Positions 10,318 to 62,297 of a stretch of 64,000 nt of DNA are shown here, in pieces. The stretch's first letter is position 1, and each line of letters opens with the position of its first letter. The notes below the pieces were generated by a model. The model saw only the letters and a list, made by a program, of their open reading frames with translations, was not told the origin of the DNA and ran no database searches. Made by a program: the position numbers and the translations under genes. The stretch is from Blastocladiella emersonii ATCC 22665 (lineage: Eukaryota > Fungi > Blastocladiomycota): contig JANHCV010000011.1 in assembly GCA_025594325.1 (NCBI GenBank), positions 1,240,001-1,304,000 of the forward strand. Direction: 5' to 3'.

Positions 10318-10437
10318 TCCATCCACAGCATCTAGATCGTCCGCCCGGAGCCCACCTGAGTCTTTCAACCCTCCTCGAACCTCCTACACTCCACCACCGC
10401 CTACATCTCTCGCACGCGCTGCTAGACCGTAGAAACC

Positions 10438-15456: not shown

Positions 15457-15669
15457 TTCGGAACGACCTTATTTTGCCACCGACCCGTGTTGGGTGAATC
15501 TTTCTTGGCTAGGTTCTTCGCGAGGTCGGGATTCGAGACTCGCCGCGTCGCCATTTCGGGCGCTGAAGTCGAGCCCGCCCAGTTCATCATTTTTTTTGCG
15601 CAGTCAACTACTCGATGAAAACACACGGTACCCACGGCACCATGTGCTGAGAGCGCTGGATCAGCGAAG

Positions 15670-16109: not shown

Positions 16110-16360
16110 TGTTCACCATGTGATTGACGCGGAAACATGTCCACCGCACAATGACACCCAAACCCTTGGCTTCCCGACCACCGCAGCCTGCGGTGTTTGG
16201 GGCTGCAGCAGCCGCTGAAAGCTGCCAACTCGACCTTTGCACCGCAGCCCCGCTTCTCTCTCTTTCCTTGATCTGACCCATTTTGCAACGTATCAACAAC
16301 ACGCAACCAAAGCTTAGTCCCAGCGCCGCCAGCTTCATCGATCTCTCGCACACGCCAGCC

Positions 16361-35800: not shown

Positions 35801-36293
35801 GTTCGAGACGACCGTGAACAGCTGGACCGAATATCGATGCGGACATCCTCAGCAAGACATACAGAACGAGAGGCGGCTGAGTGATGGAGCGTGGTGGCAA
35901 ACGCTCGGCCCGTAGTACCGCCAGGCCCAGCGGGCCTCGAATTCCAGTACTGCACAAGCTTGATGGTCTCATCCTTGTCCATATCAATGACTGGTTGCAC
36001 GACGCACTTCGCTCAACTTTCCAGGCCTTTCTCGCTGTCCAGATCACCCTGCCACGGGCGAGCTCACCGGCTCAACGACAATGGTTCGCGTCCCGCGTAG
36101 TGTTGCAGGAAGTAGAGGATAAGCAAGAAGCGATTTGAAGTCTACATGGCGTTCAGAGTTCACGATGGGGGAGAAGGGGTGAGCTGCGACGCGTTGCTCC
36201 AGCTTCAGCCACGCACGCGTATCTCCTCAACTTCAGGCCGCCAAGCGCAAGAGTATCTCATAGCAGTAAGCTCCTCTATATGTGTGTGTATCG

Positions 36294-37380: not shown

Positions 37381-37490
37381 GGTCCCTTGCAGAAGAGAGC
37401 GGGCGGCGAAGGCGGCGAAGGCGACGCGCCGGTTACGAGTCCGCCGCATCGCGTGATGTCGGCCCTCTCCCGCCTATCACGACCACCGCC

Positions 37491-39754: not shown

Positions 39755-40847
39755 ATACACGTAGGTTTGGGTCAGGGATGCGGTGCACGGCGCAGCAGCG
39801 GCCGCAGCGCTTGCTCGGACGGGCCGCGAGCTTGCTTGTTACACGCGCGGCAGGTTCCCACGCCCACACCTTGCGAGCTGAGCGCTCGAAGAGAGGAAGG
39901 CCGGGGACTGCTTCGCGCGGAGAGCGAGGGGCGAGGTCCGCGGCCTCCACCTGCCCGATCCGGGAAGACGGCCGTACACGAGCTCTCCCTCCCCCCTCGC
40001 AAATCCCGAACAACCGTCGCCCGACCTGACACCGTTGCACCGCTGCACTCGCTCGGACCATTGCTGCCCGATCAGGTGCGTCGCCCTCCCCCCCGCTCTC
40101 CCTCACGAACGGCCGGCGCGAGGCTGTCCGTGGTCGCGACCGTCACCGCGGACCTCCTCGGCCCCGCGCGCGGACACCCCTCGCTCGCAGCACCGCAATC
40201 GGCCGCTGCTGCCTTGTTCCGCGAGAGCGCCACGCGGGCCCGCTGCTCGCGTCGCGTCGCGGCCGTGTCGTGAGTCGAATTCGGTCGGCAGCGAGGCGCC
40301 TCGCAACAAGGTTTGCTGCCGCCGCCTCCGCCATCCCCGCTCCTCTCGCATGGCCAGTGAGCTCTAACCGCCATCTCGGAATCTTCTGTAGCCAGCCGGT
40401 ACGCGTCGTCGTCCGCGTGCCACGCTGCTGCGCCGTTGCGGAGAAGGAGAAGGGGAAGCTGACGCCGCCGCGAGCGAGCGTTGCTGTAGCACACCGCGGT
40501 CCCGCGCTCACTTGCGCATTGCGATTCATTCCTGGCTCTCGCCGCCCTTGCCGACGTGGTAAATTTGTGCCACCATCGCGCGAGAGAAGAGAAGAGTGAC
40601 GGGCCGCCCTCCCGCCACAAGCAGCCATCTCCGAGCTCCCACGCCGCCCGGCGCCGCCGCCCTCTCCTCTCCCCCCTCGGCCCGCCTTCGCCACCCGCCC
40701 TCTCCTCCTCCCACCACCATCGCCTCGGCGACCTCGCACGCACTTGCTGCAACGTAATCAACACCCGACGCACGCACGCGAGTGCCAACGAGGCTGCCTA
40801 GACCCTCCGCCGCCTGCACCTCGCCCAGCCCATCACCCACGCTCTGC

Positions 40848-43593
40848 ATGACGAGCTCGCAGCCGCCTCCACTCATGAACCTCCCCCCATCCGACGACAT
40901 GGCCGCGGCTGCGCCACCCGACTTTGTCGCCGAGCCGCTGCACCACCGCTCGCTGACCAACTCGTCGGGCATCTCGGTCGGCGACATTTCGTCGACGGAC
41001 GACGAGGCCGACGCCAACGACGCCAACGACGGGTTCCTGGGCCCCTCGCGCTCCCTCGCATCGGGCCCCGCGCCCTCCATCTCGGGCGGCAGCAGCCTCG
41101 GCTCGCGGTCCGGCGCCGCCCTCGCCGCGCAGATCCACGCCCGCGCGGGCGTCGCGCCGGGTGCGCGGGCGACGCCACCCCTCCGGCCGGCTGGGCCTGC
41201 CGCCGCGCCGAGTCTGCGCGACGGGATGCCTGGGAACGGCGGCGGGGAGGGCTCGTCGCTCAAGGCGCTCGCCGACTTTCTCGCGCGCACCGGGCCCGAG
41301 GACTTTCTCCCGCAACCCGGCGCCCTCGCCAAGGACCCCAAGGAGGACCCCATGTACAAGCGCATCCTCAAGGGCCTGAAAAAGGGCGGCGACTCCAGCT
41401 CCGACGACCTCGCAGGCGGCGGTGGCCGCTCCGGCAGCAAGTCCAAGCGCAAGGGCTCCAGTGCGGGCGCGATCGCCGAGGGCGGCCCGCTCATGTCGCC
41501 CGGCGGCGAGAAGCGCAAGTTCGTCATGCTGCCCGTGCGGTACGGCGACCTCGACGTTTTTGCGGGATCCGGCCCGCAGTCCCTGCACGCCCCCTCCATC
41601 TCGTCCGGCGGATCCGGATCCGTCTCCGCCGCGTACCCGAGCGGCAGCAGCTACGAGTCTACCGGGTCCGCTGCCGCCCTCCCGCCGCCGCCCGCTGGTG
41701 CTCCCGCGCTCGGCCGCAGCGGGTCTCTGACCTCGACCAACTCGGGCATCCGCAAGCTCGAGGAGCTCATGCGCCGGTCCGCCGTCCTCGACTCCATGTC
41801 GCTCAAGTCCACGTCGTCCGGGTACAACAACAGTGGGAGTGGGAGTGGGAATAACTCGTCGTCGTCGGACCACGCGCACCAGCAGCAGCATCGCGGCGCG
41901 GGTGTGCACGACGCGTACCGCGGGTCATGGGGCACCATCGACTCGCAGCCGACGACTATCGGTGGGACGCCCGCCGGGTCGGATGTCGGGTTCCACGACG
42001 GTACGGGTTTCTCTCAACGCGTCGAGCGAAGTTCCGCGAAACTGATCCCCCGCTCGCACGTGTCTAGGCCAACAACAGCAACAGCAACACCCACCCTCCT
42101 TCTCGCGCGCCCCGCCGTCGACGCTCTCCATCGCCTCGGCCACGGGCGGCGCTGGCGGGCCCGGCCTGATCCGCTCGCTCGTCCAGGCCGCCGGCGTGTC
42201 GCCGACGCGCGCCACCTTCGACACCGCGTCCACGTCTACACCGCCGCCACCCGCGCCCGTGTCGGTCCACGCCACGGGCAACACGGACACGTCGTCGTCG
42301 CACCAGCTGCCGCAGCCCGAGTCCGCGTCGTCCCCGCGCCGCAAGGTGCGGCACGTGCAGACCCAGACGTCCGCGGCGGCCGCGCGGTCGTCCGTCTCGG
42401 GCGATCCCGCCGCCGGAGCTGGTGAGAACGGAGAAGAGGACTCGCAGCTCATGGCGGTGCTGCAGTCGCAGAACGCGTCGCTGCAGAGCAACGTGTCGAC
42501 GCTGAACACGGAGGTGTCGACTTTGCAGGCCGACAACGCGGCGCTCGTCGCGCGCATCCACTCCCTCGAGAAAGAAGCCGGCGCGGCGCGCACCTACGCG
42601 TCGAGCATCGAGATGCAGTACCAGGAGCTCCGCGGCATGTACACTTCGCTCGCCGACCAGCACGGCGCGGCCACCGACCACGCCGAGGCGCTCGAGACCG
42701 AGAGCGCCACGCACCGGTCGCACGTCGAGTACCTCGAGAAGCAGCTCGCGCACCACGCCGCGCTCCTCCAGTCGCTCGAGCAGACGCTCCTCGCCGAGCG
42801 CCAGCAGCACGCCGCTCAGAACGACGAGTTCGAGCGGCTCTCCCGCGCCGCCTACGCCAAGATGAAGCAGCTGATTCTCGAGCGCATCGACCTCGTCAAC
42901 GAAATCGACGTCTGGCGCGCCAAACTCCGCGAGGCCAACCACCGCGCCGCGGAGCGGCAGGTCGACGAGATGCTCGGCACCGCTGGGTTTTTGGGTGGGA
43001 GTGGGTCCCCGTCCACGTCGTCTACCCACTCCACGGGCGCGCCGCAGGTCCTCGTCCCACAGTCCACCGGCGGATCCAACGGCGGCACCGGCCGCGCACA
43101 GACCGCGTCCCCCGGCGCTCCCGCCGCCGGGTACTACCACCACCACGCGCACGCGTATCATCAGCACCTCCCGCACACGCCCTCGGCGCTCCACCCGATG
43201 CACACGGGCGGCAGCTCCGCTAGTGGGAACGGGCTTGGCCTCATGCCCGCGCCCGGCGGCAGCGACGTGTCCGTCGGAAGTGGCGGCGCGGGCGGGTACT
43301 ACCACCAGAACATGTACGCGCACGGCGGCGGCGGCGGCGGGATGGTCGGCGCGGCGCCAACGGGACCGCAATCAGCATCGGCCGCGGCAGCAGCAGCAGC
43401 GGCGGCGGCGGCAGCGAAACGGGTCCAGTTCAACGACCCCGCAGCCGCGGGAGCAGGAGGTGCGGGCGGGATGGCGGCGCTCGGCGCGACGCTCGCGGGC
43501 ATCCAGTCGTTTGCGCCGTACGACGCGCCACCACAAGTGCAGCAAGGGCACCGTCGCGGCGGGTCGCTGTCCAACGGCAACGGCGCGCAGTAA
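40848..43593 (+). CDS. Large low-complexity protein with a central-to-C-terminal coiled coil (exons 40848-42000, 42068-43593)
   Basis: A 67-nt gtacgg...tctag intron joins the two long ORFs in frame. Short motif SLKALADFLARTGPEDF; heptad region of about 170 aa. Confidence 0.75.
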
Positions 43594-45437
43594 CGGCTTC
43601 TCGTTTCTCTCACCACTCCCTCACCACCATCATTGTACGACTAGAGTCCTCCCCTCCCCTCCCCTCCCCTCCCATCACTGGCGTGCCTGTACGATCGATG
43701 CTCTGCTCTGCCCGCTGCTCCTCCCGTTCGTGTGTCCTGATCGCTGGTGCGCTTGTGTGTGCACGCGGCGACGCGGGGCACGCTCGCTCGCTCATTGCCG
43801 TTGCCGTTTTTGTGTTCGATCTCCTCCTTCGCTGCTCTGTTGTTGTTGTTCTCAATCCGTTCGCTCTCTGTTCTGTTCTGCTCTGTTCCCGCTCGTGACG
43901 ATATATGCTGCAAGCATCTCAGAGTTGCCACGGGCCGCAATGAGGGGACGCGAGCGTGGACTCGCTTGGCGGTCCGCGTGCCGGCGGAAGCTCGTCCTGT
44001 GCAAGGTTTGCTACCCTTGGTGCCGACAGCATTCCATCGACGAGAGCAGGAGCAGGTCGTAGCGGATCCATAGCGAGAATCAGCTTGCCAGCGAGTGCGC
44101 TGCGGGACGCGACGCGACGCGAGAATCTGGTCGGCCCTTGACGACGGCCATCTCGCCGACAAGTTCGAGTAGGCGAGCAAGTCGAGCCGCTGACGCTCCC
44201 CGTGTGTGTAGTTCGAAGCAACCTCGAATCCAGTTGGATGCGGAGCAGGCGCCCGGATCGAGCTTGGCGCGCGGCGGGGAGTTGTGCTTCGCTCACCCGA
44301 GCGAGCATTTGGAGAACGGCGAAGGAGCGACATGGATGAGCGCAGCGAAATAAAGCGCAGTATATCTTGTCAACGTGCCCGGCACAACCGGAGCGGGGCT
44401 GCAAGCGCGGTGAACGAGGGGCCGGCCGAGTGCGATGGTCATGAGGCGTGACCCTGGGTTGGAGCCAGGCTCGGAGCCCCGCCGCTCACCTCGCCGCGGC
44501 CGCCGCACCCTTCACGTGCTCTTCACCTCACGGTAGAGACTCCAGACTTGATGCATTCGCATGTCATGATCGCATGAAGATCCATGGGCTGGCTCAACGC
44601 GCGCTGGCTGCTTGCCGCCGGCTTTGCCTTGAGAACTAGACTGCCGCGCTGCCGCGTTCGCTGAGCGAGAGCGTTCGCCGTACAGCGAACCGGGCCACGT
44701 TGGGTATCTTGTAAAGAGCCAACTGCGCTGCTATCGCGCATGCTGGTGTTGAGTGATCTATGATTCCGGACCCCCGCGGTGCGTTGCCCGCATCACCGGC
44801 CCGCACTCGTCCCCCGTCAGCGGTGCCCCCCGCTGCCCCGCCGCGGCTCACGCACACTTTCGCTCGTGTGACTCGCACCCGATAGATCGCCATCAATCGA
44901 GCGCATCCTGGCATTTTGAACCAGGCCGGATCGGTGAGAACGAACTCATCTGGGTACGCGCGCATGAGTCGCGCCGATTGGCGCTGATGTGAATGGGATG
45001 ATGGCTAACGGCAAATGCTGTCATGCCAGCCGCAAGGGCAGACACATTTTGCAAGGCCTAAGCAGGTCGCATGCACTCGGTTCACCTGTTCGCGGCACCA
45101 GGAGCTTTCTCATGTTGACCAAACGCGACAACGTACTGACACCTGGCCTTGCTGCTCTGTTTTGCCCTTCTTTGCGCGCCAATTTACTGACGATATTCTC
45201 TTCCGTACGGAAGAGTTCCACTGGCTGGTCCGCTCGATCAATCTCATCGCACATAGCTACCCGAACGGTCCGCTGCTGCCTCCCCGTGCCGTTCGGCTTC
45301 GATCGTTCACGCTCCGCGCATTACCAACCGTGTAGCTCTCTAGACTTCCAAGGCTAGATGTGGTGGTACGCTGCAATGTCCTCCCACCCTGTCGTCCATG
45401 CACCATCAGCCCCGCACGCGCACGACGTCTCTTACCA

Positions 45438-45490
45438 GCAGCACTTGCACAGGCGGCGTGAAAAAGTCGGGCCGCCCGCGCGGGTGCTGC
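45438..45490 (-). repeat. Hairpin element copy E (inverted)
   Basis: Reverse complement reads gcagcacccgcgcgggcg-gcccgactttttcacgc-cgcctgtgcaagtgctgc. Confidence 0.8.
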
Positions 45491-46634
45491 TCTCTCGCTG
45501 ATTGTCGCGCGCGCGCGCGCGTTCTTCCGACAGTGCTGGGCGACGGGGTCAAGCACGACGGTGCGGAGCGTGGTCGCGGACGCGTGGACGGGACTCGCGT
45601 GGCGATGATGATCTTCGATATACCTGCATGCTTTTTGCTCAACAAGCTCGATGCTTTCGTGGGGACTTGGTTTGACGCGAGGCCGCCTTCATCAGCGTGA
45701 TGGGCGGAGCTGGTGCAGCGGGACGGTCGCGTCCACAGTGGAAGCTGAAAACGGCGCGTCGCGCCACGGGACGCTGCCGCTCTGGCATCGCGCTCACTTC
45801 CGACGCCATGCATCACCCTATTGCTTCTTGCTTATCTTTAACTTGCTGCAATCAACTTCGAGTGACACATCTGTGATACGGACGCGCGTTTCGTGACGCA
45901 CTTTCGAAGTGAGCCGCTCGAGCTATGCCCGCGTTTGTGCCTGTTGATCCCGTACCACCTGAAGCCGTTCCTGTACGCATGCTCTTTCCACGCGCGCTCC
46001 CCCCGCTCTTCGCTCCTAGCGTTCCTTGGTTTGCAATCGTTGACCCCGCGAGCCTGCTTTAAATAGCATTCCAGCCTTACTATCAATGGGTGTCAAAGGA
46101 CCGGTTGCCCCTGGCAGACGAGTGTGGGCTCAACTTTGATTGAGTGGCATGCTCAAAGCGTTGCGATTGTGACCGCCGCTGTCGCGCTACGCAAACGGGG
46201 AGCGGGTTCAGGGCGAGCAGGCTCAGGATGGATCGGCCATGGCTGCTCGAATCTCGCCTCCGCGCCAAGAAGGTCCCATCCGCTGGTGATAGGCTGGGCC
46301 AAGAGAACATGCTTCTTGCCGAACCACGGTCTTCCCAATCCGACATCTCGGTGCGTGCTCACTAATATGCCACGGTATCGACCTGCAAACTCACCCACCA
46401 ACTCGACCACACCGCTTCTATCGTATCTAGAACATCCTTGGAATGATAAATCCGCTTGTACTCGGAAACGTCCTAACCAAGTCGACCGAGCTATTCGAGA
46501 GCATTACTTTGGGACGACTCTGACGGTTTCCCGCAGCTGACAGTCCTCGAATTCATGCCGCGGAAGATCGCTGCGCGCTGTCCTCACTCTGGCGCCATCG
46601 CACCTCAACCGCGCGCGCGCGACATCTCAAATCA

Positions 46635-46690
46635 GCAGCACCCGCGCGGGCGCCGTGAAAAAAACTACGCGCCGCCCGCGCGAGTGCTGC
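46635..46690 (-). repeat. Hairpin element copy F (inverted)
   Basis: Reverse complement reads gcagcactcgcgcgggcg-gcgcgtagtttttttcacgg-cgcccgcgcgggtgctgc; the stem is identical to copy C. Confidence 0.88.
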
Positions 46691-47062
46691 TCCCTTGCTG
46701 ATCGTCGCGCGCGCGATTTTCGCTGGTGCTGGGCGTCGGGGTCAAGTTTGACGATGCGCCGTTGTCGCAATGGGGTTGGCTTGTCGATTGTGAGATTGCT
46801 CTGTGGTATTCATAGCTTCACTTGCTTTGTTCTGCTCGTGGGCGTCGATGCGTGTTAGGCTCGCTTCTGAGCTCGTGCCATACCCGCAACGCGCGAGTTT
46901 CGGACGCGCCGCGAGCCACATGTGTGGCGCAACGCGTTGACGCGATCTCGAACATCCGCGTTCGTGCTCGGTCCGCAAGAAAGGAGTTGGTACGCATACA
47001 GAGAACGCATAACACTATCAATTTGAAATACACACATCCCATTGCACCAATCACGACGTTCA

Positions 47063-48709
47063 TCAACGCTGGATGTACCGGGCGCGCTTGACTGCGGCCA
47101 CGCGCGGATCACGCAGAAGGCGGGCCTCGGTGAAGGCAAAGCCCTCCTGCCGCACAAATTTGAGCAGCTCGTTGTCGTTTTGCGATGGATCAATGTCCGG
47201 ATCACGGAAAAGGTACTCGATGACCGCTTGATTGCCAGGACTCTGCATCGCCCCGAAAAGCGTCACGTCTTTCTCCTCCAACAAAGACTGGCCGTACTCG
47301 TGGAGGAGCCACTCGATTGTCTCGATCTGACGCTGATAGGACTGCCGGTACCTGAGCTTTGGTACGCGGTAGAGAAGATAGGCGGAGCGGACTTGGAGCA
47401 GCTCTGGCGCGTCAGGGAGCTCGCCATGAACCGCTTCAAGGAGCTTCGGACGAGCGGTGAGCAAGAGCCAGCGCAAGACAACAAGATTCGCGTCGCCAGC
47501 GACCCACTTGGCGATCGCCGGGAGGGAAGCAACAAGGCGTGCACGCACACGGGGACCAAGCTGAAGGAGTCGCACGAAGAGATACTCGGCATGTGCGGTA
47601 TTACGGTCCTGGCAAGCAGCTCGGAAGGCCACTTTGGCATAAAATGGACATCTTGACCACATCAGGGAATAGGCCGCATTGACGATGCAGTTGTAGCACT
47701 CGAGGTTGCCGAGCCGCCAAGCCAAAGTGAAGAGTGTCGATTCGCCAAACCAGTTCTGAAAGAACTCCTGACCGAGAAGGTGAAGCTGCGCGTTGAGCGC
47801 AACAACGTCGCCGAGAACAAGTGCATGGCAAAGTGCCGCCAGTTCATTACTAAGGAAGATTCGAGCGCCGCGGTGGGTCACAAACTGGCGCACACGGTCA
47901 ATGTGGCCGTATCGACAGATCCTAGTAACAGTAGAGCGCGCATAATCTTCGATCCAGTTTGGAAGCTCTGGATGGTCGGCAAGTCGACCAAGAATGGCCT
48001 CGGTTACGGCTTCATTATTGAGAATGACGGCTTGGGCGAGCAGCCACGACGGCTCCGTCCAGCAATCCCTGCTCTCGAAGTACGACAGACACCGCTCCCA
48101 AGCTGTATCAAGTAAGGACTTGGCTCGCGGGTGCCCAGCCAAAATAGCGAGCGGGACGGCTGCTAGCGGGTTCGTCTTGGCAATTTCGTCGATGTCAGCC
48201 GCTGCAGCGACAATACACAGCGATGGAAGATGCAACTCGTTTGCAGCATCGATAGACATACGAAGCTGTCGTGGACGAGAAAGGAGCACTCGAGCAAGCT
48301 CAACCGCACCGGAGCGGCCATGATTGACGTACTGTACGGCGAGCTCAAAGTCGGCATTGTCGTGACAGGATGACAACACGCCCGAAAAGCGTGAAGTTGG
48401 GTCGAACAGGACGCAAAGAGTTTCAGTATCGAGTAAATCGACGGCTCCAACGAGGAGCGCACGAGCAGCGGCCATCTCGTTGCCCTTGTCGGGGACGAGG
48501 CCCTGCTCAATGAAAATCAAGCGCAGGGCAGTACATGGACGGCGGCGAAGTGCCCATTCAACGCGCTCCTTGACATCGGACGTGGTCGCCGGAAGGCGGC
48601 TCAGGTCGGTGCAGGTCTGCCGCAGCCGCGACAGCTGCCGCGCGTCAAGGTATGCAGCGAGGTTGGCAAGAATGAGCGAAGGCAGCAAGTTAAGTTTGAG
48701 TTTGTCCAT
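47063..48709 (-). CDS. F-box-like N-terminus + ankyrin-like helical repeats, intact single exon (548 aa)
   Basis: LNLLPSLILANLAAYLDARQLSRLRQTC is an F-box pattern. The C-terminal IEYLFRDPDIDPSQNDNELL resembles the DPS..DN ankyrin variant of zoosporic fungi. Low codon bias. Confidence 0.75.
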   Translation of the reverse strand: MDKLKLNLLPSLILANLAAYLDARQLSRLRQTCTDLSRLPATTSDVKERVEWALRRRPCTALRLIFIEQGLVPDKGNEMAAARALLVGAVDLLDTETLCVLFDPTSRFSGVLSSCHDNADFELAVQYVNHGRSGAVELARVLLSRPRQLRMSIDAANELHLPSLCIVAAAADIDEIAKTNPLAAVPLAILAGHPRAKSLLDTAWERCLSYFESRDCWTEPSWLLAQAVILNNEAVTEAILGRLADHPELPNWIEDYARSTVTRICRYGHIDRVRQFVTHRGARIFLSNELAALCHALVLGDVVALNAQLHLLGQEFFQNWFGESTLFTLAWRLGNLECYNCIVNAAYSLMWSRCPFYAKVAFRAACQDRNTAHAEYLFVRLLQLGPRVRARLVASLPAIAKWVAGDANLVVLRWLLLTARPKLLEAVHGELPDAPELLQVRSAYLLYRVPKLRYRQSYQRQIETIEWLLHEYGQSLLEEKDVTLFGAMQSPGNQAVIEYLFRDPDIDPSQNDNELLKFVRQEGFAFTEARLLRDPRVAAVKRARYIQR

Positions 48710-49138
48710 TTGTGTTCATGTGTGAGGATGAGGTTCAGTAGAGCGAACGTGAAGTATGACGGGAGACATTCTTGATCCCGTCGCGAGCAAAATGAGGAAC
48801 CCCGAAAAATGTGGCGCCACGCGGTCACCTGAGCGGCGCGACGCGTCTCCCACCAACTGTCTCGCAGGAGCACCGACCACGCGTGCAATCCGGGGCACTT
48901 GCCCCGCGCGCACTTTCCGGGACCCCGATTAACGGCGACACTTGCCGCTCGTCGGCTTTGATGGGGTCGATCGGGGCCGCCATGGTCACGCCCACGCGTT
49001 CATCATACGCGAGGGAGTTCGCCCCCTGCCTCCCTCGCACTCCCGCCCCAAATCGCACAACACCATGGATCAGGCTTGTTAAGATCAGTCCGCGTTTCCT
49101 CGCTGCCCATCAACGAAACACTCCATGCATTCACGACC

Positions 49139-49315
49139 ATGGCGTCAATCGCGATCCAGGACAAGCTGGCCGAGGCCGGCGGGCTTGTCTCGTTCGCGAC
49201 GCTCATGCTCACCGTGTGCGGGCGCGTCTCGGTGTGGTTCACGGCCGACCTCGTCTGGTCGTTCAAGGACGCCCTGCGCATCATGTACCTGGTCTCGTGC
49301 GGCCCCGTATTATGA
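49139..49315 (+). pseudogene. Internally deleted fragment paralogous to the 7TM gene at 50005
   Basis: MASIAIQDKLAEAGGLVSFATLML/TVCGRVSVWFTADLVWSFKDALRIMYLVS vs MAPVAIRDQLSEAGGLVSFATLVTML...(~45 aa)...TGCGRVLVLFAADFVWSIKDALRIAYLVS. Confidence 0.8.
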
Positions 49316-50004
49316 CAACGATACACAAAAACCACCACGGGCTCAAGAACTTTACTTGGCCCGCCCAAAACCATGGACGAGATCATGCCGAAGTTCCCAA
49401 AGTTGCGGCTAATGAGCAGCACGGCGCCAGCTGCAGCGCCGCCCGGTAGGAGGTGGAGCAAGTGAACGCCGCCGCCGACGTCGAGTGGCAGGCCCGTTCC
49501 ACCGCAGGGTTTGCTATTCATGTCTTTTGGCTCATAAGTTCAAGAGCAGCTCTCTCATAAAAGTAAATGTTCATTGCATCAAGTTTTATTTGCTACATAG
49601 TACTTGGCGTGGGATGGGAAGAGCTGGAAACACGAAGCGCTTAGCAGCCGGCGATCACCTGATTTCGCAACACGTCTCGCACCCCGTCTCGCATCCCAGC
49701 CCGGGAGACACGCGCCTTGCGTTCCGTCCTGTGCATCTCCATGCGGTGATCGAAAGGGAGGAAAATGGGACACGCGGGCTCGAGCGGAGGCGCGAAACTG
49801 TCATCCGAAAAACCCGTGCGGGGAGACTTGGTGGGAGACGAGTGCGCTCGGTATTGTCAATCCAGATATCCAGTTCCGAGTGCCACCAGAGCAGAGCCAC
49901 GAGTCCGCTCACTCGATCCTGCGAGTATTGATCACAAACGAACTTTGACCATGCAAAGCTGATGAAAGCTTCCCGCTGAGATCTACAGCATTAAACCTCA
50001 TGCA

Positions 50005-51756
50005 ATGGCGCCCGTTGCAATTCGAGACCAACTGTCCGAGGCCGGGGGACTTGTTTCATTCGCAACCCTCGTCACGATGCTCGCACACGAGTTCGGCGAC
50101 AAACGCAGTCCAGCACGAACCTTCGAACAAGGCTGGCTGCGTTGGATGCTTGCACTTGACACGCTGGCGTTTGGTGTCTATTACACAGCCACAACGTCGG
50201 GAACAGAGCTGACGGGCTGCGGTCGCGTCCTGGTTCTGTTTGCAGCCGACTTCGTGTGGTCCATCAAGGACGCGCTGCGGATCGCCTACCTCGTTTCTCG
50301 TGGCCTTACGATCTGCCATAACGAATCCCTGGCCGCAGCGAGGGTTTCGGGCGCCGTGTCGCTTGCTCTGTTCTGGATACTCCTCGCGCACGCCTTCGCC
50401 CTTTCTGACAACGACTTGACGGCATGCACAGCGCGTCTCTCCGCTTCACCAAGCACATTCATTGTTCCTGGGTGGCCAGCATACGTCTTGTCGTCGTTCT
50501 GGATCCTGTGCGAGCTTTCCATTGCCTTAGTACTCGTCAAATCAATTGTCAAACGCTTGCGTGCGCGCTTCGCGCTCGGAGCAACTTCTCGTCAAGACAC
50601 CCAAACGCTGGCCGATGTGTCTCGCACCAACTCTTTGGGAGCTTTGCCTCATCGAACCGCAACCAGGCAGCAAACACACGTCTCGAGGCTCCCTTCCATC
50701 GCAGTACCTTTGGCAGCAAGCGTCGCACCGGTCGACCTGCAAACCAGCGGCGACGCCCATGATCGCCTCCAATCACACGGAGACCGGCGTCGGTCATCAA
50801 CAACTCCGCTGGTGGTTCGACCATCTAGCCTTGGACCCGTCCATGGCTCCTTCATGGAAACGAAGGCAACCTATGCTTTCACCGTGCAGCAACACACGTC
50901 TAGCGTTTTGGCGTCGCATCCGCCGAGACCCGTCGCCCCAGGCGACTCTTGTCGCACTTCAACGATTCCTGGAACTCCGCCGTCTGCGTCACCGCCGGCA
51001 GCAGTTGTAGGCCATGTTGCACGGGAGCTTGCGAAAGCTTTACTTGCTCGCGAAGAGGGCCGCCTACTTTTTAGCATCATACTGATGATCTACGCGTCGT
51101 GTTCATCGATTGTGGGCACGACCGTTGGTCCCACGTCAGGCGCATTTTCGAGCCTGCCTGTCATGGTTTACGCGCAGCTCCTTCTCTATCTCAGCTCGCT
51201 GATATGCAATGATCGCCCACGTTCGAACAGCTCGAATGATACGGTCAATGGTCTCGCGGAGGCAGCTGCCATCAGGTCCGCGGGCGTCGGCGCCGCGACG
51301 AGACGTAAACGACGCGCGACCGTGGCCGTCGTCCAAACTGGACGGCAATCTCCCTTGCCGGACCATCGAACCAGCGCCTCGCTTGATCCCGCCACCGCTG
51401 TTCCTGCGTGGACCAGCAAGCTTGGCACGTTCGGGATCGACGCGATCCAGTCGTGCGGTCCAACGTTTCGGACCTCGGCCATCGACATCGCGCTCACGGC
51501 CGCGGCCACGGCGGTCGCGGCGGCGGCACAGTCGACCGAGACCTCCTCAGTACATCTTGAAGATCCACCCGGGCCAGCGCTGACAGACGTCAACGCGCCC
51601 GGGTCGGCCGAATCAAGTGGACCCCTTCGCAGCGACGTTAGCCCTGGATCGATGATGGGCGCGGATCAGCGCCGTATGCGCGCGGCGCGCGTGCTCAACA
51701 GTCACTCAACTGCAGGCGTCGGGCCCGGTCGGAGCGGAACTATCGAGCATGGCTAA
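50005..51756 (+). CDS. Seven-transmembrane (GPCR-like) protein with long third intracellular loop
   Basis: Five hydrophobic segments in the first ~180 aa, a ~170-aa Ser/Pro/Arg-rich loop, two more segments (LLFSIILMIYASCSSIVG; LPVMVYAQLLLYLSSLI), then a disordered tail. Intronless. Confidence 0.6.
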   Translation: MAPVAIRDQLSEAGGLVSFATLVTMLAHEFGDKRSPARTFEQGWLRWMLALDTLAFGVYYTATTSGTELTGCGRVLVLFAADFVWSIKDALRIAYLVSRGLTICHNESLAAARVSGAVSLALFWILLAHAFALSDNDLTACTARLSASPSTFIVPGWPAYVLSSFWILCELSIALVLVKSIVKRLRARFALGATSRQDTQTLADVSRTNSLGALPHRTATRQQTHVSRLPSIAVPLAASVAPVDLQTSGDAHDRLQSHGDRRRSSTTPLVVRPSSLGPVHGSFMETKATYAFTVQQHTSSVLASHPPRPVAPGDSCRTSTIPGTPPSASPPAAVVGHVARELAKALLAREEGRLLFSIILMIYASCSSIVGTTVGPTSGAFSSLPVMVYAQLLLYLSSLICNDRPRSNSSNDTVNGLAEAAAIRSAGVGAATRRKRRATVAVVQTGRQSPLPDHRTSASLDPATAVPAWTSKLGTFGIDAIQSCGPTFRTSAIDIALTAAATAVAAAAQSTETSSVHLEDPPGPALTDVNAPGSAESSGPLRSDVSPGSMMGADQRRMRAARVLNSHSTAGVGPGRSGTIEHG

Positions 51757-51951
51757 CGGATTGGTTCCTGCGGCCAGCGTCCGTGGTCGGCACAATGGCC
51801 GCGGTGCCGATGACGCGATGCTGCCATGTAACGTGTTTGCACTTCTGAGCGCGAAGGGTTGAAAGCGAGGTTGCTGCGCAAGCGAGACTCAGCCCAATAC
51901 TCGTGCTGGATCTTGAAGAATGAATACAGACACTGGTTGGAGAAAAAACGG

Positions 51952-53209
51952 CGCGACACGAGCGTGGCGAGTAGAGTATATCTGACAGGAACGACACAAA
52001 TGCAACACGATCACGACGAGGCACCCTCGGTGCAGCGGCGCCAGACGAGCTGGTAGGTCTCGGACGTGGTGCCGGTCGACGGCGAGCGGCCGAGCGAGGC
52101 GCGGCTCGTGGGCGTGGTGGGCGTGCCCGAGATCTCGGAGGCGGACTGGACCTGGAAGCGGGCGGGCCCGCCGCACGGCGACCAGTTGAGGGCGGGGGCG
52201 GCCTGGCGCAGCGACACGGGCGCGACGGCGGACGGCGACCCCTGCGGGCGGAACGTGAAGGCGGTCGGCCCGCTGCCGCCGCCGGTCGAGACGAGCGCGC
52301 GGTGCACGGCCGCGGTGCCCGGCGGGGTCTGCGCGCCGCCCTCGTAGGTGGCCGCCTGCACGGCGACCTGGTACCCGCGCGGCACGTCGAGGTCGAAGCC
52401 GTAGTCGCACTGCGCGCTCGGCCCGGCGCCGCCCGCGAAGCCCTGGCCGGGACCGCCGCTGCCGCCCGGCCCGCCGCTGCCGCCGAGCGACGACTGGAAG
52501 TTGTAGAAGATGACGCTGATATAGCTGTTGTCACCAGCCGTGATGATGATGATGGGCGCGTTCACGTTGCTGCCGCCCGGCCCGCCCGCGCCGCCCGGCC
52601 CACCGGGACCGCCCGTGTTGCTGCCGGGACCACCGCCACCACCACCACCACCGCGAGGGCAGCCCGACCCAGAGTAGGCGAGGCCGCTCGTGCGCAGCGG
52701 GCCCGGCGGCGGCGCCGTGAGTCCGCCCGCACCGCCCGCACCGCTTCCGGGAGCACCGGGGACCTGCCGCTTCGACAGCGAGCGCGGCGACTCGTACGGC
52801 GGCGGCGGGTACGGCGGCGGGTACGGCTTGGGCGACGGCGGCGGCGGAGGCGGGCGCTCGGTCTCGGTCGGCTGCACCGAGGACGAGGACGAGGACGAGG
52901 TCGTGGTCGGCGTAGGCGTGGGCGTAGGGGTTGGCGTAGGGGTCGGTGTAGGCGTAGGCGTAGTGACGGGCGGCGGACGCTCCGTCTCAGTCGGCTGCAC
53001 CGACGAGGACGACGAGGACGTCGTGGTGGGCTTGGGCGGCGGCGACGGCGGCGTGTAGGGCGCGGGCGGGCGGCGCTTGCCCCCATCAGGCAGTGCCACG
53101 GCCACCGACGGCGCGCCGACGAGCGCGACGCCGAGCAGCGCGACCACCAGCGCCGCGAGAACCGAAAGCCCGAGCGGGCGCGAGCCGCGGCGCGTCTTGT
53201 CGGCGGCGG
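51952..53209 (-). repeat. Left arm of 1258-bp inverted repeat flanking biotin synthase
   Basis: Position x pairs with 109576-x. Differences found: 52104/57472 (silent AGC/AGT) and 53200/56376. Weaker similarity extends about 50 bp outward. Confidence 0.95.
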
Positions 53210-53222
53210 AAGAAGAGTACAT
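52011..53222 (-). CDS. Secreted Pro/Thr-rich + Gly-rich protein with DUF4360 domain, copy 1
   Basis: Signal sequence; SPPP/(PT)n/YPPP stalk; LSKR|Q site; LAYSGSGCP.G, ISVIFYNF, CDYGFDLDVPRGYQ, WSPCGG and LVWRRC match DUF4360 as I recall it. TATAA at 53310-53314. Confidence 0.85.
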   Translation of the reverse strand: MYSSSAADKTRRGSRPLGLSVLAALVVALLGVALVGAPSVAVALPDGGKRRPPAPYTPPSPPPKPTTTSSSSSSVQPTETERPPPVTTPTPTPTPTPTPTPTPTPTTTSSSSSSSVQPTETERPPPPPPSPKPYPPPYPPPPYESPRSLSKRQVPGAPGSGAGGAGGLTAPPPGPLRTSGLAYSGSGCPRGGGGGGGGPGSNTGGPGGPGGAGGPGGSNVNAPIIIITAGDNSYISVIFYNFQSSLGGSGGPGGSGGPGQGFAGGAGPSAQCDYGFDLDVPRGYQVAVQAATYEGGAQTPPGTAAVHRALVSTGGGSGPTAFTFRPQGSPSAVAPVSLRQAAPALNWSPCGGPARFQVQSASEISGTPTTPTSRASLGRSPSTGTTSETYQLVWRRCTEGASS

Positions 53223-53933
53223 GGTGTGTGTGTGTTTGTTTGGACTCGGTCGCAGTTGCTGGTGAGGTGCAGGAGCAGTCACAGGGTAGGCCGGGGGCGC
53301 GGCCGCTACTTATACCGACCGCGGTGCGGTCTCAGCGGCGGCGCGACGGGCCCCGGATGCGGAAGGTGGGCCTCGGATCGCGACGGTGCCGGCGTGGGCG
53401 GTGTCTCGGCGCCATCACATCGGCCGCCGATCCGCAGCGACGGCACCGAAGCCTGCCCGAACGAGCGGCGGGCCTTGGCGGTCTCGGTGCCAGCCGGCGT
53501 CGCGCGGGTATCGCGTGGGCGGCCAGACATGGGTTCTCGGCAGGTGGCAGCGTCTCAGATGCATGGAGTGTCGCGGCGGGGTGCCTCGGCGGGCCCGCGT
53601 GAAAAGGGAGGGAAGGCGAGCGAGCGAGCGAGCGTGCTCGGCAGGGCGCGACGCGTCTCTCAGGGGTCACCTGTTCGCCGACGCGTCCCGAGCGCGCGGA
53701 GTCGGCTCGGCCGCGAGGCGTTACGATCGCATCATGTGACGTTCCGCACGGCGTGCCGATCGGTCCCCAACGGGGCTTGCCACCGGCGCGTCCCCAAACG
53801 CGCGCTAACAGCCGAGCCGACCGGGCGGCGACTTTACGCCAACCCAAAGTGCAAGGGGCCGCCCTCGCACCCCTTCTCTCTCCCTTCATCAACGATCGCT
53901 CTGACTTGCTACGCATCAACCACCACCACCGCC

Positions 53934-55303
53934 ATGTTCCCGACCCGCCAGCTCGTCCCAAGACTCGCCGCCGCTGCCTCGCGGTCGGCGACGCGTGCCG
54001 CTTCGCGCGCTGCTCCGCGAACCCTCGCCGCCGCGTCGATCCCGCGAGTCGCCGGCCTGCACTCGTCGACGACCCAGAACGCCGTCGAGGCGCCCGCCGC
54101 GACCACCGCTACTACGGCTTCGGTCCCGCCACCTGCCCCCGTCGATCGCCGCCAGGACGGTCGCGCGCAGAGCGGCGCCGCCTTCCACGCGCTCAACCAC
54201 ACGGGTCTGCGCTACAACTGGACCCGCGAGGAGATTGCCGCCATCTACAACTCGCCGATCATGGACCTGCTCTTCTACGGCGTACGGCTCGCACTCCCTA
54301 CGACGGATCACTCGGCCACGCTACTAACCTTGTAAATCGAACAGTCCTACGTCCACCGCCACCACCACGACCCGCTCGCCGTGCAGCAGTGCACGCTGCT
54401 CTCCATCAAGACGGGCGGCTGCTCCGAGGACTGCTCCTACTGCCCGCAGTCGTCCAAGCACTCGACCAGCGTCAAGGCGTCCAAGATGCTCGGCGAGGAC
54501 GAGGTGCTGTCGGCCGCGCGCCGCGCCAAGGAGGCCGGCTCCACCCGCTTCTGCATGGGCGCCGCCTGGCGCAGCGCCCAGGGCCGCAAGACCAACTTCA
54601 AGCAGGTCCTCAACTACGTGACCGAGATCCGCGGCATGGGCATGGAGGTGTGCTGCACCCTCGGCATGCTCGACGCCGAGCAGGCCAAGCAGCTCAAGGA
54701 CGCCGGCCTCTCCGCCTACAACCACAACCTCGACACCTCGCGCGAGTTCTACCCCAAGATCATCACCACCCGCTCCTACGACGACCGCCTCGACACCCTC
54801 GCCAACGTCCGCGACGCCGGCATCCACGTGTGCTCGGGCGGCATCATTGGTCTCGGCGAGTCGGCCGACGACCGCGTCGGCATGCTGCACACTCTCTCGA
54901 CGCTGCCCAAGCACCCCGAGTCGGTCCCCGTCAACGCCCTCGTCGCCGTCCAGGGCACCCCGCTCGAGAAGCAGGACCCCGTGCCCGTCTGGGACCTCGT
55001 CCGCATGATCGCCACCGCCCGCATCGTCATGCCCGGGTCCATGGTCCGCCTCTCGGCTGGCCGCGTCCGTCTCTCCATGACCGAGCAGACCCTGTGCTTC
55101 ATGGCCGGCGCCAACTCCATCTTCACCGGCGAGAAGCTCCTTACCACTGACAACAACGACTGGGACACGGACAAGGCCATGTTCGACACGCTCGGTACGC
55201 TCTCTCATCTCTCCTCCTCCGCTTTCGCGGCGCCGAAACTAACTCTTCATACCCCGCATCATCAGGTCTCATTGGCCTCAAGCCCGACCTCGTCAAGAAC
55301 TAG
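53934..55303 (+). CDS. BIO2: Biotin synthase with mitochondrial presequence (exons 53934-54281, 54345-55194, 55266-55303)
   Basis: [23 protein letters not shown] (CxxxCxxC radical SAM), [55 protein letters not shown]; two GT-AG introns. Confidence 0.97.
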
Positions 55304-55314
55304 CTGCAACCATC

Positions 55315-56050
55315 TCATTCCCAGTTCCCCATCCCCCGCCAATAGATCCATTCTGTCCCACTCGAGCAAGCCTCGCCCTCGACGTAGCCGACGCGCATCG
55401 CCGCGTACGACGGGATGGGCTGCTGCTGCCGCTGCATGCCGCGGCAGCGGTTGAGCACGGCGGCCGCGTTGGTGAGCATAGTACGGCTGGCGCGGCCGGC
55501 GGCCATGGCCTTGTCATCGTCCTTAAACGTGTCAAGCGTGCCGCTGGTCGGGACCATGGTCTGCTGCGCGAGTTGCGCGCCGAGCGATCTGCGCCGCAGT
55601 GGTCCACCGCACAAACAGCACGCCGTGCGTCTTGCTGCCAGCGAGCTTCTCGGACGTGTCCGACGCGACGCGATGCTGGGGCTCGGACCACTCGATCTCT
55701 GACCGCACGCACTCACGGACCAGCAAGCGCGAGAGCACGAGGATCATCTGCATCCGGTCGTCGAAACGCCAGCTGGGGTCCTTCTCTGTGAGCCCGCGTG
55801 AGACGCAGCGGTGCTTGTTGAGCAGCATCAAGTAGTTGATCCTTGACAACAGAAACGCTGGTGACATCGCACACGGCGTACTACTCGAAGCCGAGCGTGA
55901 CCAATGATGCTTTTTAAGAGAGCGTCTCCAGATGGCGGAAAGGAGGCCGAGGTGCAGGTGCTGCACCAACTGCTGGTTGTCCGTGACCGTCGCCTCTGAC
56001 ACGAGCCGTACTGGGAGCGTGCTGCGTTGTGCTCGCGGCCAGCGCGCAGG
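55315..56050 (-). pseudogene. Frameshifted coding relic inside the inverted-repeat spacer
   Basis: LLSRINYLMLLNKHRCV...MILVLSRLLVRECVRSEIEW continues in another frame as QQTMVPTSGTLDTFKDDDKAM. No family recognised. Confidence 0.3.
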
Positions 56051-56362
56051 ACCGAGGCTCAGTGCGCGCTCATGGCGTCGTGCAGGGTACAGCTCGAGTG
56101 TCAGTGGGCATTCTGTGTGGGTTGCCGAACCGCGAGCGCAATCAAGCGACGAGCTTGGTCGCGAGCTGGGACGCAAGACGCGTCAAAAAAAAACACGTGG
56201 CTGAGTTCGACGCGGCCGACGCGTCCCTCTCCTGTTCGGCGCCCGCAAACCGATCGACCGGCCGCGAATATCGTGGGCCTCAGTTGACCGATGTACACTA
56301 TGCAATTGCTAGGAGAACCGTAACGCCATGACAGGCGCGAATGACCGCTCGAACCGAGCGAC

Positions 56363-57565
56363 ACCGCCGCCGCCGCCAAGACGCGCCGCGGCTCGCGCCC
56401 GCTCGGGCTTTCGGTTCTCGCGGCGCTGGTGGTCGCGCTGCTCGGCGTCGCGCTCGTCGGCGCGCCGTCGGTGGCCGTGGCACTGCCTGATGGGGGCAAG
56501 CGCCGCCCGCCCGCGCCCTACACGCCGCCGTCGCCGCCGCCCAAGCCCACCACGACGTCCTCGTCGTCCTCGTCGGTGCAGCCGACTGAGACGGAGCGTC
56601 CGCCGCCCGTCACTACGCCTACGCCTACACCGACCCCTACGCCAACCCCTACGCCCACGCCTACGCCGACCACGACCTCGTCCTCGTCCTCGTCCTCGGT
56701 GCAGCCGACCGAGACCGAGCGCCCGCCTCCGCCGCCGCCGTCGCCCAAGCCGTACCCGCCGCCGTACCCGCCGCCGCCGTACGAGTCGCCGCGCTCGCTG
56801 TCGAAGCGGCAGGTCCCCGGTGCTCCCGGAAGCGGTGCGGGCGGTGCGGGCGGACTCACGGCGCCGCCGCCGGGCCCGCTGCGCACGAGCGGCCTCGCCT
56901 ACTCTGGGTCGGGCTGCCCTCGCGGTGGTGGTGGTGGTGGCGGTGGTCCCGGCAGCAACACGGGCGGTCCCGGTGGGCCGGGCGGCGCGGGCGGGCCGGG
57001 CGGCAGCAACGTGAACGCGCCCATCATCATCATCACGGCTGGTGACAACAGCTATATCAGCGTCATCTTCTACAACTTCCAGTCGTCGCTCGGCGGCAGC
57101 GGCGGGCCGGGCGGCAGCGGCGGTCCCGGCCAGGGCTTCGCGGGCGGCGCCGGGCCGAGCGCGCAGTGCGACTACGGCTTCGACCTCGACGTGCCGCGCG
57201 GGTACCAGGTCGCCGTGCAGGCGGCCACCTACGAGGGCGGCGCGCAGACCCCGCCGGGCACCGCGGCCGTGCACCGCGCGCTCGTCTCGACCGGCGGCGG
57301 CAGCGGGCCGACCGCCTTCACGTTCCGCCCGCAGGGGTCGCCGTCCGCCGTCGCGCCCGTGTCGCTGCGCCAGGCCGCCCCCGCCCTCAACTGGTCGCCG
57401 TGCGGCGGGCCCGCCCGCTTCCAGGTCCAGTCCGCCTCCGAGATCTCGGGCACGCCCACCACGCCCACGAGTCGCGCCTCGCTCGGCCGCTCGCCGTCGA
57501 CCGGCACCACGTCCGAGACCTACCAGCTCGTCTGGCGCCGCTGCACCGAGGGTGCCTCGTCGTGA
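56363..57565 (+). CDS. DUF4360 secreted protein, copy 2; start codon unresolved
   Basis: Same protein as copy 1 from KTRRGSRP onward. An in-frame TGA lies at 56342-56344 with no ATG after it. A start at ATG 56291 or 56300 works only if 56320-56358 (gtaacg...tgac...ag, 39 nt) is an intron. Confidence 0.65.
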   Translation, partial: TAAAAKTRRGSRPLGLSVLAALVVALLGVALVGAPSVAVALPDGGKRRPPAPYTPPSPPPKPTTTSSSSSSVQPTETERPPPVTTPTPTPTPTPTPTPTPTPTTTSSSSSSSVQPTETERPPPPPPSPKPYPPPYPPPPYESPRSLSKRQVPGAPGSGAGGAGGLTAPPPGPLRTSGLAYSGSGCPRGGGGGGGGPGSNTGGPGGPGGAGGPGGSNVNAPIIIITAGDNSYISVIFYNFQSSLGGSGGPGGSGGPGQGFAGGAGPSAQCDYGFDLDVPRGYQVAVQAATYEGGAQTPPGTAAVHRALVSTGGGSGPTAFTFRPQGSPSAVAPVSLRQAAPALNWSPCGGPARFQVQSASEISGTPTTPTSRASLGRSPSTGTTSETYQLVWRRCTEGASS

Positions 57566-57624
57566 TCGTGTTGCATTTGTGTCGTTCCTGTCAGATATAC
57601 TCTACTCGCCACGCTCGTGTCGCG
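56367..57624 (+). repeat. Right arm of 1258-bp inverted repeat
   Basis: Reverse complement of 51952-53209. Confidence 0.95.
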
Positions 57625-57660
57625 TCTTTTCTTTCTCCAACCAGTGTCTCTATTTATCAA

Positions 57661-58318
57661 TCAGGGTCCAGCGAGCGTCTCAGCGAGCATCGAGCTCAGC
57701 CACGACGGAACACTCGCCGCTGTGCTGCCTGTTTCGTGAGCCGCCGTCGCTGTCCGCCCGCCCGCTTGCACTTGCGGTGTCGACGCGCCGTCCGCCGACG
57801 TACTCGACGACGAGCGTTCCACACTCGGTGAGGAGGCGGTCGGGCTCAGTGTCCGCGAGGGATCCACGCTCGCCGCCTGCGACTCGATCGCCTCGACCTC
57901 AGCGCCCGGACCCTACTCGTCCATCGCTGTTCGTCAGTCGCGCCGCCAGGAGCTGAGATTGACCGAGAGTGCGTACCAGGTTGAGCAGCATCGCGTCGCA
58001 CACCGCGTCCGCGTGCGCGAGCTTCTCGAGCATCTTGACCGTGTACGTCTCCGGCCCGCAGTGCGTCAGCTGGTCGAGCCCGCTACACGGACAAGCGCAC
58101 GCAACTCATCAGGTCCATGCGATCCGCCGTGGAGACGCGGAGCGCGTACTTGAAGGTGCCCTGGTTGAAGTGCACGATCACCTCGGAGCACAGCCGGAAG
58201 ATGTCCTACGCCTCGCTCGCCGATCAGCGCCTGGTGGTTCACGGTCGTGGCAACCCAAGCTTACATCGACGGTTTGCGCCAAGTCGGACAGGTTGCTTTC
58301 ATTCGGATACGTTGACAT
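57661..58318 (-). CDS. Small 4-exon protein resembling Mediator tail subunit Med2/Med29 (exons 58318-58265, 58205-58150, 58082-57977, 57912-57661)
   Basis: Three canonical introns (59, 67 and 64 nt) give an open frame. TVDDIFRLCSEVIVHFNQ and MLEKLAHADAVCDAMLLNL resemble yeast Med2 CFDDILKVGAEMMMQQQ and LKEKVKLFHGILDDLETSL. The gene model is more certain than the family. Confidence 0.55.
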
Positions 58319-60623: not shown

Positions 60624-62297
60624 CTAGACACCGGCCTTGATGGCCTTCCGCGCGCCGATCTGCTCGACCGCCCCCTTGGCCTTGAAGCTGAGCGCGGGGA
60701 GCGGCAGCTTGCCTGTGCCCCAGATGTGGAAGTCCTTGTTGGCGACCTTGGAGCGGATGTGGAAGTCGAGCGAGTGCTCGTGGCTGACGTCGACGTTGAT
60801 GTCGCCAGCGGAACGGGGCGAGCCGCCGACCGACGCCTTGGCGCTGGAACTCATGGCCATGCCAATCGACGAGTCGAGCTCGAGAGCCAGATCAAACACC
60901 GGCACCTTCCAGATACGCAGGCCGACGCCGAACGCGGGGATGACGTGCGCAGAGATGCCGGCGCTCACATCAGCGGAAAGCGACGGCGTGTGCGGCGTGA
61001 CGCTCATCTTGCCGACGGCCTTGCCGACGGGCTTGGCGAACAGGCCGTTCTGCGACTCGACGCTCCACTCGAACGGGTACGACATCTCGAGGCCCGCCGA
61101 CAGCTTGAGCGAGGCCGCCATCTCGTACGTCGCGGCCGCCTTGACGCGCATCTCGGGCGACATGGACAGGATGCCCGGGATGCTGAAGGGCGTGAGCGGC
61201 AGGACGAACACCTCGACCGAGAACAGGTCGGCCTTGTGCTCCTTGAACGTGCGCAGGAACAGGTCGAGGTTGCCGGCCAGGTCGCCGGCGAGGGCCACGC
61301 GGTACGTCTTGAGCGACGTGATGCTGCCGGTCGCCTCGAGACTGAACGTCGCGCGGCCGTGGACCGAGATATCCGCGCCGAGCTCGGCGATCGACGAGTT
61401 GAGAAGCGCGACGAACGGCTTGAGCGGCTTGCGGGCCTTCTTGTCCCAGTTGACGTTGAGGTCCCAGCTGACCTGCTTCTTGGCGACGTCGCGGCGGACG
61501 AGGCCGGCCTCGGCCTCGATCTCGGGCAGGTCGTGCTGCGCGACCGACAGCGAGAACTCGTCGATCACGTCCTCGGCCTGGACCTGCTTGGACGCGAGGA
61601 CGACCTTGGCGCCGTTGGCCGCGGGCTTCTGCGCGGCCGTGATCTCGCGCACGCTGATCTCCTCCTTGCCGTCGCACTTCCACTCGCGGCCAACGAGAAC
61701 CGCCCAGGTATCGGTCGTCTTACCCCACTCGGCGCTCGCCGAGGCCGCGGCCGCCGCGTCGTCGAACGTGAGCGTGACCGAGCCCGTGGCGCACTCGACG
61801 GCCGTGATCTGCGGGAAGTTGTCGAGGACGATGGTCGGCACCTTGGTCTTGAGGTCGCACTTGGCCAGCATGAAGGCCGGCTTGCCGAACACGTTCTCGT
61901 GCGACGGCACGTCGGCGACGTACGCGGCCTTGACGTCCTTGACGGGCGCGAAACTCGAGCGCGGGATCGGGAGAGGGTGCATCGGGACCGGCTTGGCCTG
62001 CGCCGCGCCGCGCGAGCGGCCCATGTACTCGCCGTTCTGTGGAGATCGAGGGAGAATGAGTGAGTGGGTGTCGCGAACGGGCGTCGGTGAACATCGACGT
62101 ACCTTGCCGGTGCGCAGCACATACGAGTCGTCGGCGGGGTTCACGGGCTTGACGACGAACTCCTCAGCGGGGATCGGTAGCGGGATGTCGCGGGCACTGC
62201 CCGAGGCAGCGGCGTGGGCCGGATCGGCCGAGCCAGCGAGGAGCGCGAGGGCGGCGGTAGCCACGAAGGCGAGCGAGAGGGCGGGTGGAGCGACCAT
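60624..62297 (-). CDS. Secreted DUF7029/DUF7223-like protein, paralog 2 (exons 62297-62103, 62036-60624)
   Basis: Colinear with 10438-12431, with the same intron position (VLRTGK|NGEY vs VLRAHE|NGEF). Lacks the Pro/Thr tail. Confidence 0.78.
   Translation of the reverse strand: MVAPPALSLAFVATAALALLAGSADPAHAAASGSARDIPLPIPAEEFVVKPVNPADDSYVLRTGKVRRCSPTPVRDTHSLILPRSPQNGEYMGRSRGAAQAKPVPMHPLPIPRSSFAPVKDVKAAYVADVPSHENVFGKPAFMLAKCDLKTKVPTIVLDNFPQITAVECATGSVTLTFDDAAAAASASAEWGKTTDTWAVLVGREWKCDGKEEISVREITAAQKPAANGAKVVLASKQVQAEDVIDEFSLSVAQHDLPEIEAEAGLVRRDVAKKQVSWDLNVNWDKKARKPLKPFVALLNSSIAELGADISVHGRATFSLEATGSITSLKTYRVALAGDLAGNLDLFLRTFKEHKADLFSVEVFVLPLTPFSIPGILSMSPEMRVKAAATYEMAASLKLSAGLEMSYPFEWSVESQNGLFAKPVGKAVGKMSVTPHTPSLSADVSAGISAHVIPAFGVGLRIWKVPVFDLALELDSSIGMAMSSSAKASVGGSPRSAGDINVDVSHEHSLDFHIRSKVANKDFHIWGTGKLPLPALSFKAKGAVEQIGARKAIKAGV

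Follow-up and report, generated by a model that had tools for sequence, protein, structure and literature searches.

Gene-bearing palindromes and inverted segmental duplications on mammalian sex chromosomes keep the identity of their arms by arm-to-arm gene conversion. In Candida albicans, long inverted repeats give rise to inversions through non-allelic homologous recombination, and an inversion of ~3.1 kb has been demonstrated (PMC6591007). In Ogataea polymorpha, flip/flop mating-type switching relies on recombination between inverted repeats, which inverts the DNA between them so that the orientation sets the expressed copy (PMC5720833). Here, we analyzed a 64,000-nt stretch of the Blastocladiella emersonii genome (C3:1240001-1304000, referred to as the window; the host assembly comprises 32.65 Mb in 21 contigs, which are designated by C-numbers), in which the biotin synthase gene BIO2 lies between two near-identical, inverted copies of a DUF4360 gene. 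An original prediction had described this locus as a possible invertible cassette. According to our analysis, it looks like a real but ordinary inverted duplication and not like a genetic switch. We consider it likely that part of a DUF4360 gene was duplicated in inverted orientation and copy-corrected by gene conversion, leaving a non-coding right copy and a structure that is passively invertible.

The BIO2 locus shares features with each of the systems above. As in the palindromes of mammalian sex chromosomes, two inverted arms that are >99.8% identical surround a unique spacer, and identity drops abruptly at the edge. The arm identity lies far above that of the adjoining homologous DNA, although the diverged zone is short. 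Unlike these palindromes, the arms at the BIO2 locus are tiny (1.27 kb) and hold only part of one gene, in one of them without a start codon. The locus resembles the C. albicans case in that kilobase-scale inverted repeats flank a few kilobases of unique DNA in a fungal chromosome; whereas inversion was demonstrated there, the BIO2 locus only has the potential for it. With O. polymorpha it has in common that inverted repeats bound an invertible segment with the potential to choose the expressed copy. However, the two Ogataea states express different genes through centromeric silencing and switching is induced, while the alternatives at the BIO2 locus, judged on the coding content of the arms, are the same gene, and both states would express the same protein.

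A repeat search followed by base-by-base comparison placed the two arms at 51943-53209 and 56367-57633 (1267 nt each, five mismatches), separated by a spacer of 3157 nt (53210-56366); the whole structure spans 5.7 kb. Three mismatches lie at the outer edge (51945, 51949 and 51951), one in the core (52104) and one nine bases from the inner edge (53200). Within 51952-53209, the predicted arm length of 1258 nt with two differences, one of them silent, was therefore exact: codon 8 is GAC or GCC (Asp/Ala, D8A) and codon 373 is AGC or AGT, which leaves the amino acid unchanged. The predicted spacer, with the same length and with BIO2 inside it, was likewise recovered, and the flanks do soon become unrelated. 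On the inner side, homology drops to background at once, leaving only a residual 6-nt ATGTAC, and the inner junction of the copied segment falls in a GCC run. On the outer side, homology runs for a further ~45 nt at ~80% identity with one indel, up to 51905 and 57672, and includes an exact 22-mer; the flanks beyond these positions are unrelated. In a genome-wide count, the arm sequence occurs in two copies, and the DUF4360 paralogs are at most 73% identical to it. Both arms score well above the cut-off for DUF4360 (PF14273; 64.8 bits for the left and 65.2 bits for the right arm, cut-off 27, profile positions 52-178 of 178). The features of the locus, in window coordinates, are as follows.

51905-51951, left outer edge zone; partner of 57625-57672, ~80% identical, one indel
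51943-53209, left arm of the inverted repeat; 1267 nt
52011-53222, minus strand, complete DUF4360 gene; 403 amino acids, ATG at 53222, stop ending at 52011
53223-53933, intergenic region from which the left DUF4360 gene and BIO2 diverge; contains the CACACACC leader, the motif AAGTAGCGGCCGCGCC and TATAA
53934-55303, plus strand, biotin synthase gene BIO2; exons 53934-54281, 54345-55194 and 55266-55303
55373-56075, minus strand, frameshifted and internally deleted relic of a 677-amino-acid orphan open reading frame (ORF), with an intact relative on C20
56291-56366, plus strand, non-homologous 5' flank of the right DUF4360 copy; family leader and promoter motif absent
56367-57633, right arm of the inverted repeat; 1267 nt
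56367-57565, plus strand, 5'-truncated DUF4360 copy; codon 5 to stop
57625-57672, right outer edge zone; partner of 51905-51951

The two copies differ at their 5' ends, and it is the left one that has kept the ancestral form. The arm boundary lies 13 nt downstream of the A of the left-copy ATG, and the right arm picks up at codon 5. Upstream of the left copy, a TATAA (53314-53310) adjoins the 16-mer AAGTAGCGGCCGCGCC (53296-53311), which is common to the left copy and to the upstream region of a DUF4360 paralog on C11. The same two genes also have in common the CACACACC leader and an ATG-TA(C/T)-TCT-TC start, and a locus on C19 apparently carries the same leader on the other strand (this match was not realigned). 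All three elements, the leader, the ATG-TAC-TCT start and the upstream 16-mer, are absent from the 5' side of the right copy. Reading upstream in the frame of the right copy leads to an ATG at 56291, which is followed by the stops TAA (56321-56323) and TGA (56342-56344); two further ATGs (56328 and 56341) are out of frame, and the sequence downstream contains neither an in-frame ATG nor an internal methionine. Taken together, the missing leader, start and motif, the arm beginning at codon 5, the upstream stops and the lack of a methionine identify the right copy, on its sequence, as a duplicate that is truncated at its 5' end and has neither a promoter motif nor a start codon. It never had, or has lost, a start codon, and is most likely an untranslatable partial duplicate that is carried along as a non-expressed, non-coding passenger. 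The prediction that promoters and start codons lie in the spacer thus holds for the left copy and fails for the right one, which has no start and no promoter motif; that only the left copy has a clear TATAA and ATG proved correct, the right copy lacking a TATA box as well as the family motif.

The remainder of the spacer contains a single-copy gene and a decayed one, the latter overlooked in the original prediction. BIO2 is present as a single copy, its BATS domain being found once in the genome. Its domains were identified by searching single exons and not the joined protein (Radical SAM, PF04055, 80.5 bits; BATS, PF06968, 96.1 bits); exon 2 holds both of them as well as the CxxxCxxC motif in the form CSEDCSYC. 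The two introns of 63 and 71 nt start with GTACG, contain ACTAAC and end with AG. Between BIO2 and the right arm, several blocks of 55373-56075 match the 677-amino-acid ORF on C20 at 74-90% nucleotide identity. Since the match requires two frames and has internal deletions, we regard this segment as a relic. The interval separating BIO2 from the right arm therefore reads as degraded duplicated material and not as a dedicated promoter. The N-terminal part of the C20 protein has three matches of identical score and mixed orientation on C19 (near 63.5, 89.0 and 149.0 kb). No Pfam families were detected in the relic gene, its C20 relative or the neighbors.

How the arms stay so similar is most apparent at their outer edge. 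Identity steps sharply from ~99.9% to ~80%: the core contains one difference in 1248 nt, compared to about 10 in 51 aligned columns of the outer zone (Fisher p = 4e-14). This step favors gene conversion acting on an older short duplication, as originally proposed. The near-identity of a fragment without a start codon is not attributable to selection on its product, which in itself speaks for either copy-correction or extreme youth. In the sequence of events that we propose, ~1.3 kb of the DUF4360 gene, from codon 5 to ~100 nt past the stop, would have been copied in reverse orientation and would have landed 3.2 kb off on the far side of BIO2, beside the relic of another gene, receiving neither promoter nor start codon. 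Recurrent intrachromosomal gene conversion from arm to arm would then have held the core near-identical, while the outermost ~45 nt would have escaped and drifted to ~80%.

Arms that interact in this way would also be expected to undergo an occasional crossover, which would turn around the 3157-nt spacer (53210-56366) along with the inner portions of both arms, so that the promoter and the ATG would read into the other arm. The inverted spacer would carry BIO2 with its own promoter and terminator, plus the DUF4360 promoter and ATG. At a distance of 9 nt from the inner edge, the Asp/Ala site would nearly always move with the promoter and leave the protein unchanged. The two isomers would thus differ only in the 3' untranslated region (UTR) beyond ~68 nt past the stop and in the downstream neighbor. 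They would be near-equivalent because the arms encode the same protein; the encoded DUF4360 protein and BIO2 would be identical in both, and any flipping would be passive and functionally near-silent. We suppose that the orientation found in the assembly is the fixed one. When compared with site-specific switches of the Hin, Fim or FLP type, the locus has no recombinase in or beside the element, and its orientations would not give different products or states, the coding parts of the arms being distinguished by a single Asp/Ala difference and a silent one. Scanned against Pfam, the ORFs of the spacer and flanks yielded only the Radical_SAM/BATS and DUF4360 families; neither a recombinase nor a specific site was found. 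The idea of an invertible cassette accordingly stands in its geometry, including the crossover, the flip of BIO2, the handover of the promoter and the change of 3' UTR, and finds no support as a switch, given the start-less right copy, the identical protein and the lack of a recombinase among the scanned ORFs. Of the seven-transmembrane protein predicted as the left neighbor, hydropathy bears out a multi-pass membrane protein.

The BIO2 locus is not the only structure of its kind in the region. A self-comparison covering 294 kb of contig C3 showed that near-identical inverted repeats are common there, with three cases including the BIO2 locus, and found no near-identical direct repeat. The first of the other two (C3:1179889-1181064 / C3:1191752-1192927) has arms of 1176 nt that differ at one position, end sharply and enclose a spacer of 10.7 kb; none of the ORFs in these arms matched a Pfam family. 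The second is a near-perfect palindrome of 26.9 kb (C3:1231072-1244448 / 1244613-1257989), which occupies window positions 1-17989 and extends 8928 nt before the window start. Its arms of 13,377 nt differ by only three mismatches, all of them at most 15 nt from the outer edge, and its spacer measures 164 nt. The three repeats have in common the architecture, the near-zero arm divergence and the sharp edges; at the BIO2 locus, the arm boundary cuts through coding sequence. The only long direct repeat in the 294 kb (C3:1128554-1130598 versus C3:1155061-1157099, window positions -111446 and -84939) is 2062 nt long and 92.7% identical. We also looked for a larger, older mirrored block around the BIO2 repeat and rejected it after blastn and tblastn comparison of 36000-51942 with 57634-84000, which returned nothing relevant. 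An Rfam scan of 51500-58200 gave no match. None of the terms inverted, palindrome, segmental and gene conversion appears in the main text of the genome paper (PMC9730499).

An older inverted pair is also present within the window (10513-12083 versus 60681-62228), with 73-83% identity and a distance of ~49 kb. The copy at 60624-62297 on the minus strand encodes a DUF7029/DUF7223 protein. As its partner is part of the right arm of the 26.9-kb palindrome, at least three members of the family are present in this region.

Two points weigh against an aged, start-less and copy-corrected duplicate. The diverged outer zone is short and could instead stem from a recent duplication with error-prone synthesis at its breakpoint, and a poor 39-nt intron candidate (56320-56358, GTAACG...GAG) would join the ATG at 56291 in frame to the right arm, leaving a slight chance that this copy is translated. 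The former point is the basis of a scenario in which a very recent one-step inverted duplication, arising for instance from a template switch or a repaired break in the (GCC)n run, was followed by no conversion at all, the outer 45 nt being the product of error-prone synthesis. Both repeat edges are sharp, the inner junction falls within the GCC repeat, and the adjacent palindrome with 13.4-kb arms also has its only three mismatches close to its outer edge, all of which would fit such an event. However, ~10 differences and an indel over ~50 nt, followed by an exact 22-mer, resemble aged homology rather than a junction scar, and the mismatch at 52104 is located far inside the core; we therefore consider a recent one-step origin unlikely. 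That the duplication is a false product of assembly is highly improbable. The B. emersonii assembly was produced from PacBio HiFi reads (mean length 10.5 kb, 6.37 Gb in total) with the La Jolla Assembler, purged of haplotigs and polished (PMC9730499). Purging and polishing are the steps that might speak for an artefact, yet the arms show five differences and a decaying edge, the unique spacer holds a single-copy essential gene between two unique outer flanks, and reads of this length at ~186x exceed the 5.7-kb structure, so that single reads can span it. The argument of the original prediction against an artefact, which was based on the arm differences and the 3' flank similarity, points the same way.

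The intron candidate belongs to the proposal that both copies are working, with the N-terminus of the right protein rebuilt by a short intron from the ATG at 56291 (MYTMQLLGEP) or by a non-AUG start, and with transcription from a region shared divergently with the relic gene. In agreement with this, ATG-TAC at 56291 echoes the ATG-TAC start of the family, the frame is restored if 56320-56358 is removed, and the signal peptide lies inside the arm. We give the intron low weight because, at 39 nt, it is far shorter than the two BIO2 introns of 63 and 71 nt and carries neither the GTACG nor the ACTAAC signal seen in these; moreover, the right side has neither a TATA box nor the family promoter motif, and the supposed divergent partner is itself a frameshifted relic. 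Two working copies are accordingly quite improbable. Another reading would be that of a functional flip-flop expression site, in which the arms recombine at a useful frequency and the 3' UTR or the neighborhood makes the expression of DUF4360 or BIO2 depend on the isomer. A promoter in the spacer facing promoterless coding arms has the look of an invertible expression site, and flip/flop switching by recombination of inverted repeats exists in a fungus, namely in Ogataea (PMC5720833). On the other hand, both arms yield the same protein, Pfam scans of the spacer and flank ORFs found no recombinase or silencing landmark, the arms are being homogenized and not kept different, and the genes carried by comparable repeats in this genome are unrelated. 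We rate such a site as having hardly any probability, and it is very unlikely that cultures contain both isomers side by side, with an output of DUF4360 or BIO2 that varies by way of 3' UTR and neighborhood, or, on a wider scale, that B. emersonii exploits its many palindromes as a source of reversible structural variation. The preferred reading thus remains that of a partial inverted duplication with copy-corrected arms.

With regard to the DUF4360 family itself, a genome-wide Pfam scan found three loci above the cut-off, namely the two arms and the C11 paralog, in addition to weaker DNA matches on C19. DUF4360 forms an elongated beta-sandwich with conserved disulfides, and fungal members have been described as secreted proteins (PMC10792529). 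The left protein has a charged N-terminus followed by a hydrophobic stretch, which hydropathy places at residues 13-47 as a signal or anchor. Next comes a stalk rich in Pro, Thr and Ser that includes an internal repeat, and then a DUF4360 domain interrupted by Gly-rich sequence (residues 269-397). A look-up of the exact left product returned no record, and a search of the Protein Data Bank with the DUF4360 domain gave no significant match. Word searches with the whole protein and the domain region in 5.8 billion protein clusters returned only the C11 paralog H9P43_002730 and neither of the window copies; as these searches were limited to 222-705 amino acids and typical DUF4360 proteins of 200 amino acids fall outside this range, the blank says little. 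The two window copies may be unannotated or mis-modeled in this stretch of 75-78% GC. We further observed that AAGTAGCGGCCGCGCC and the CACACACC-ATG leader are kept between DUF4360 paralogs that are otherwise only ~70% identical. The two elements may represent a family-specific promoter element.

Taken alone, the repeat at the BIO2 locus matters little, being small and probably neutral, with two possible orientations that would be equivalent. It is a useful case all the same, in that selection on the protein does not explain the near-identity of the start-less arm, which points to copy-correction. At 5.7 kb, the structure is small enough for orientation polymorphism to be read directly from individual HiFi reads, whereas the 26.9-kb palindrome is not spannable by HiFi reads averaging 10.5 kb. 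The value of the BIO2 repeat lies in being one data point in what looks like a genome-wide pattern, in which the B. emersonii assembly is unusually rich in inverted near-identical duplications, with direct ones absent in 294 kb.

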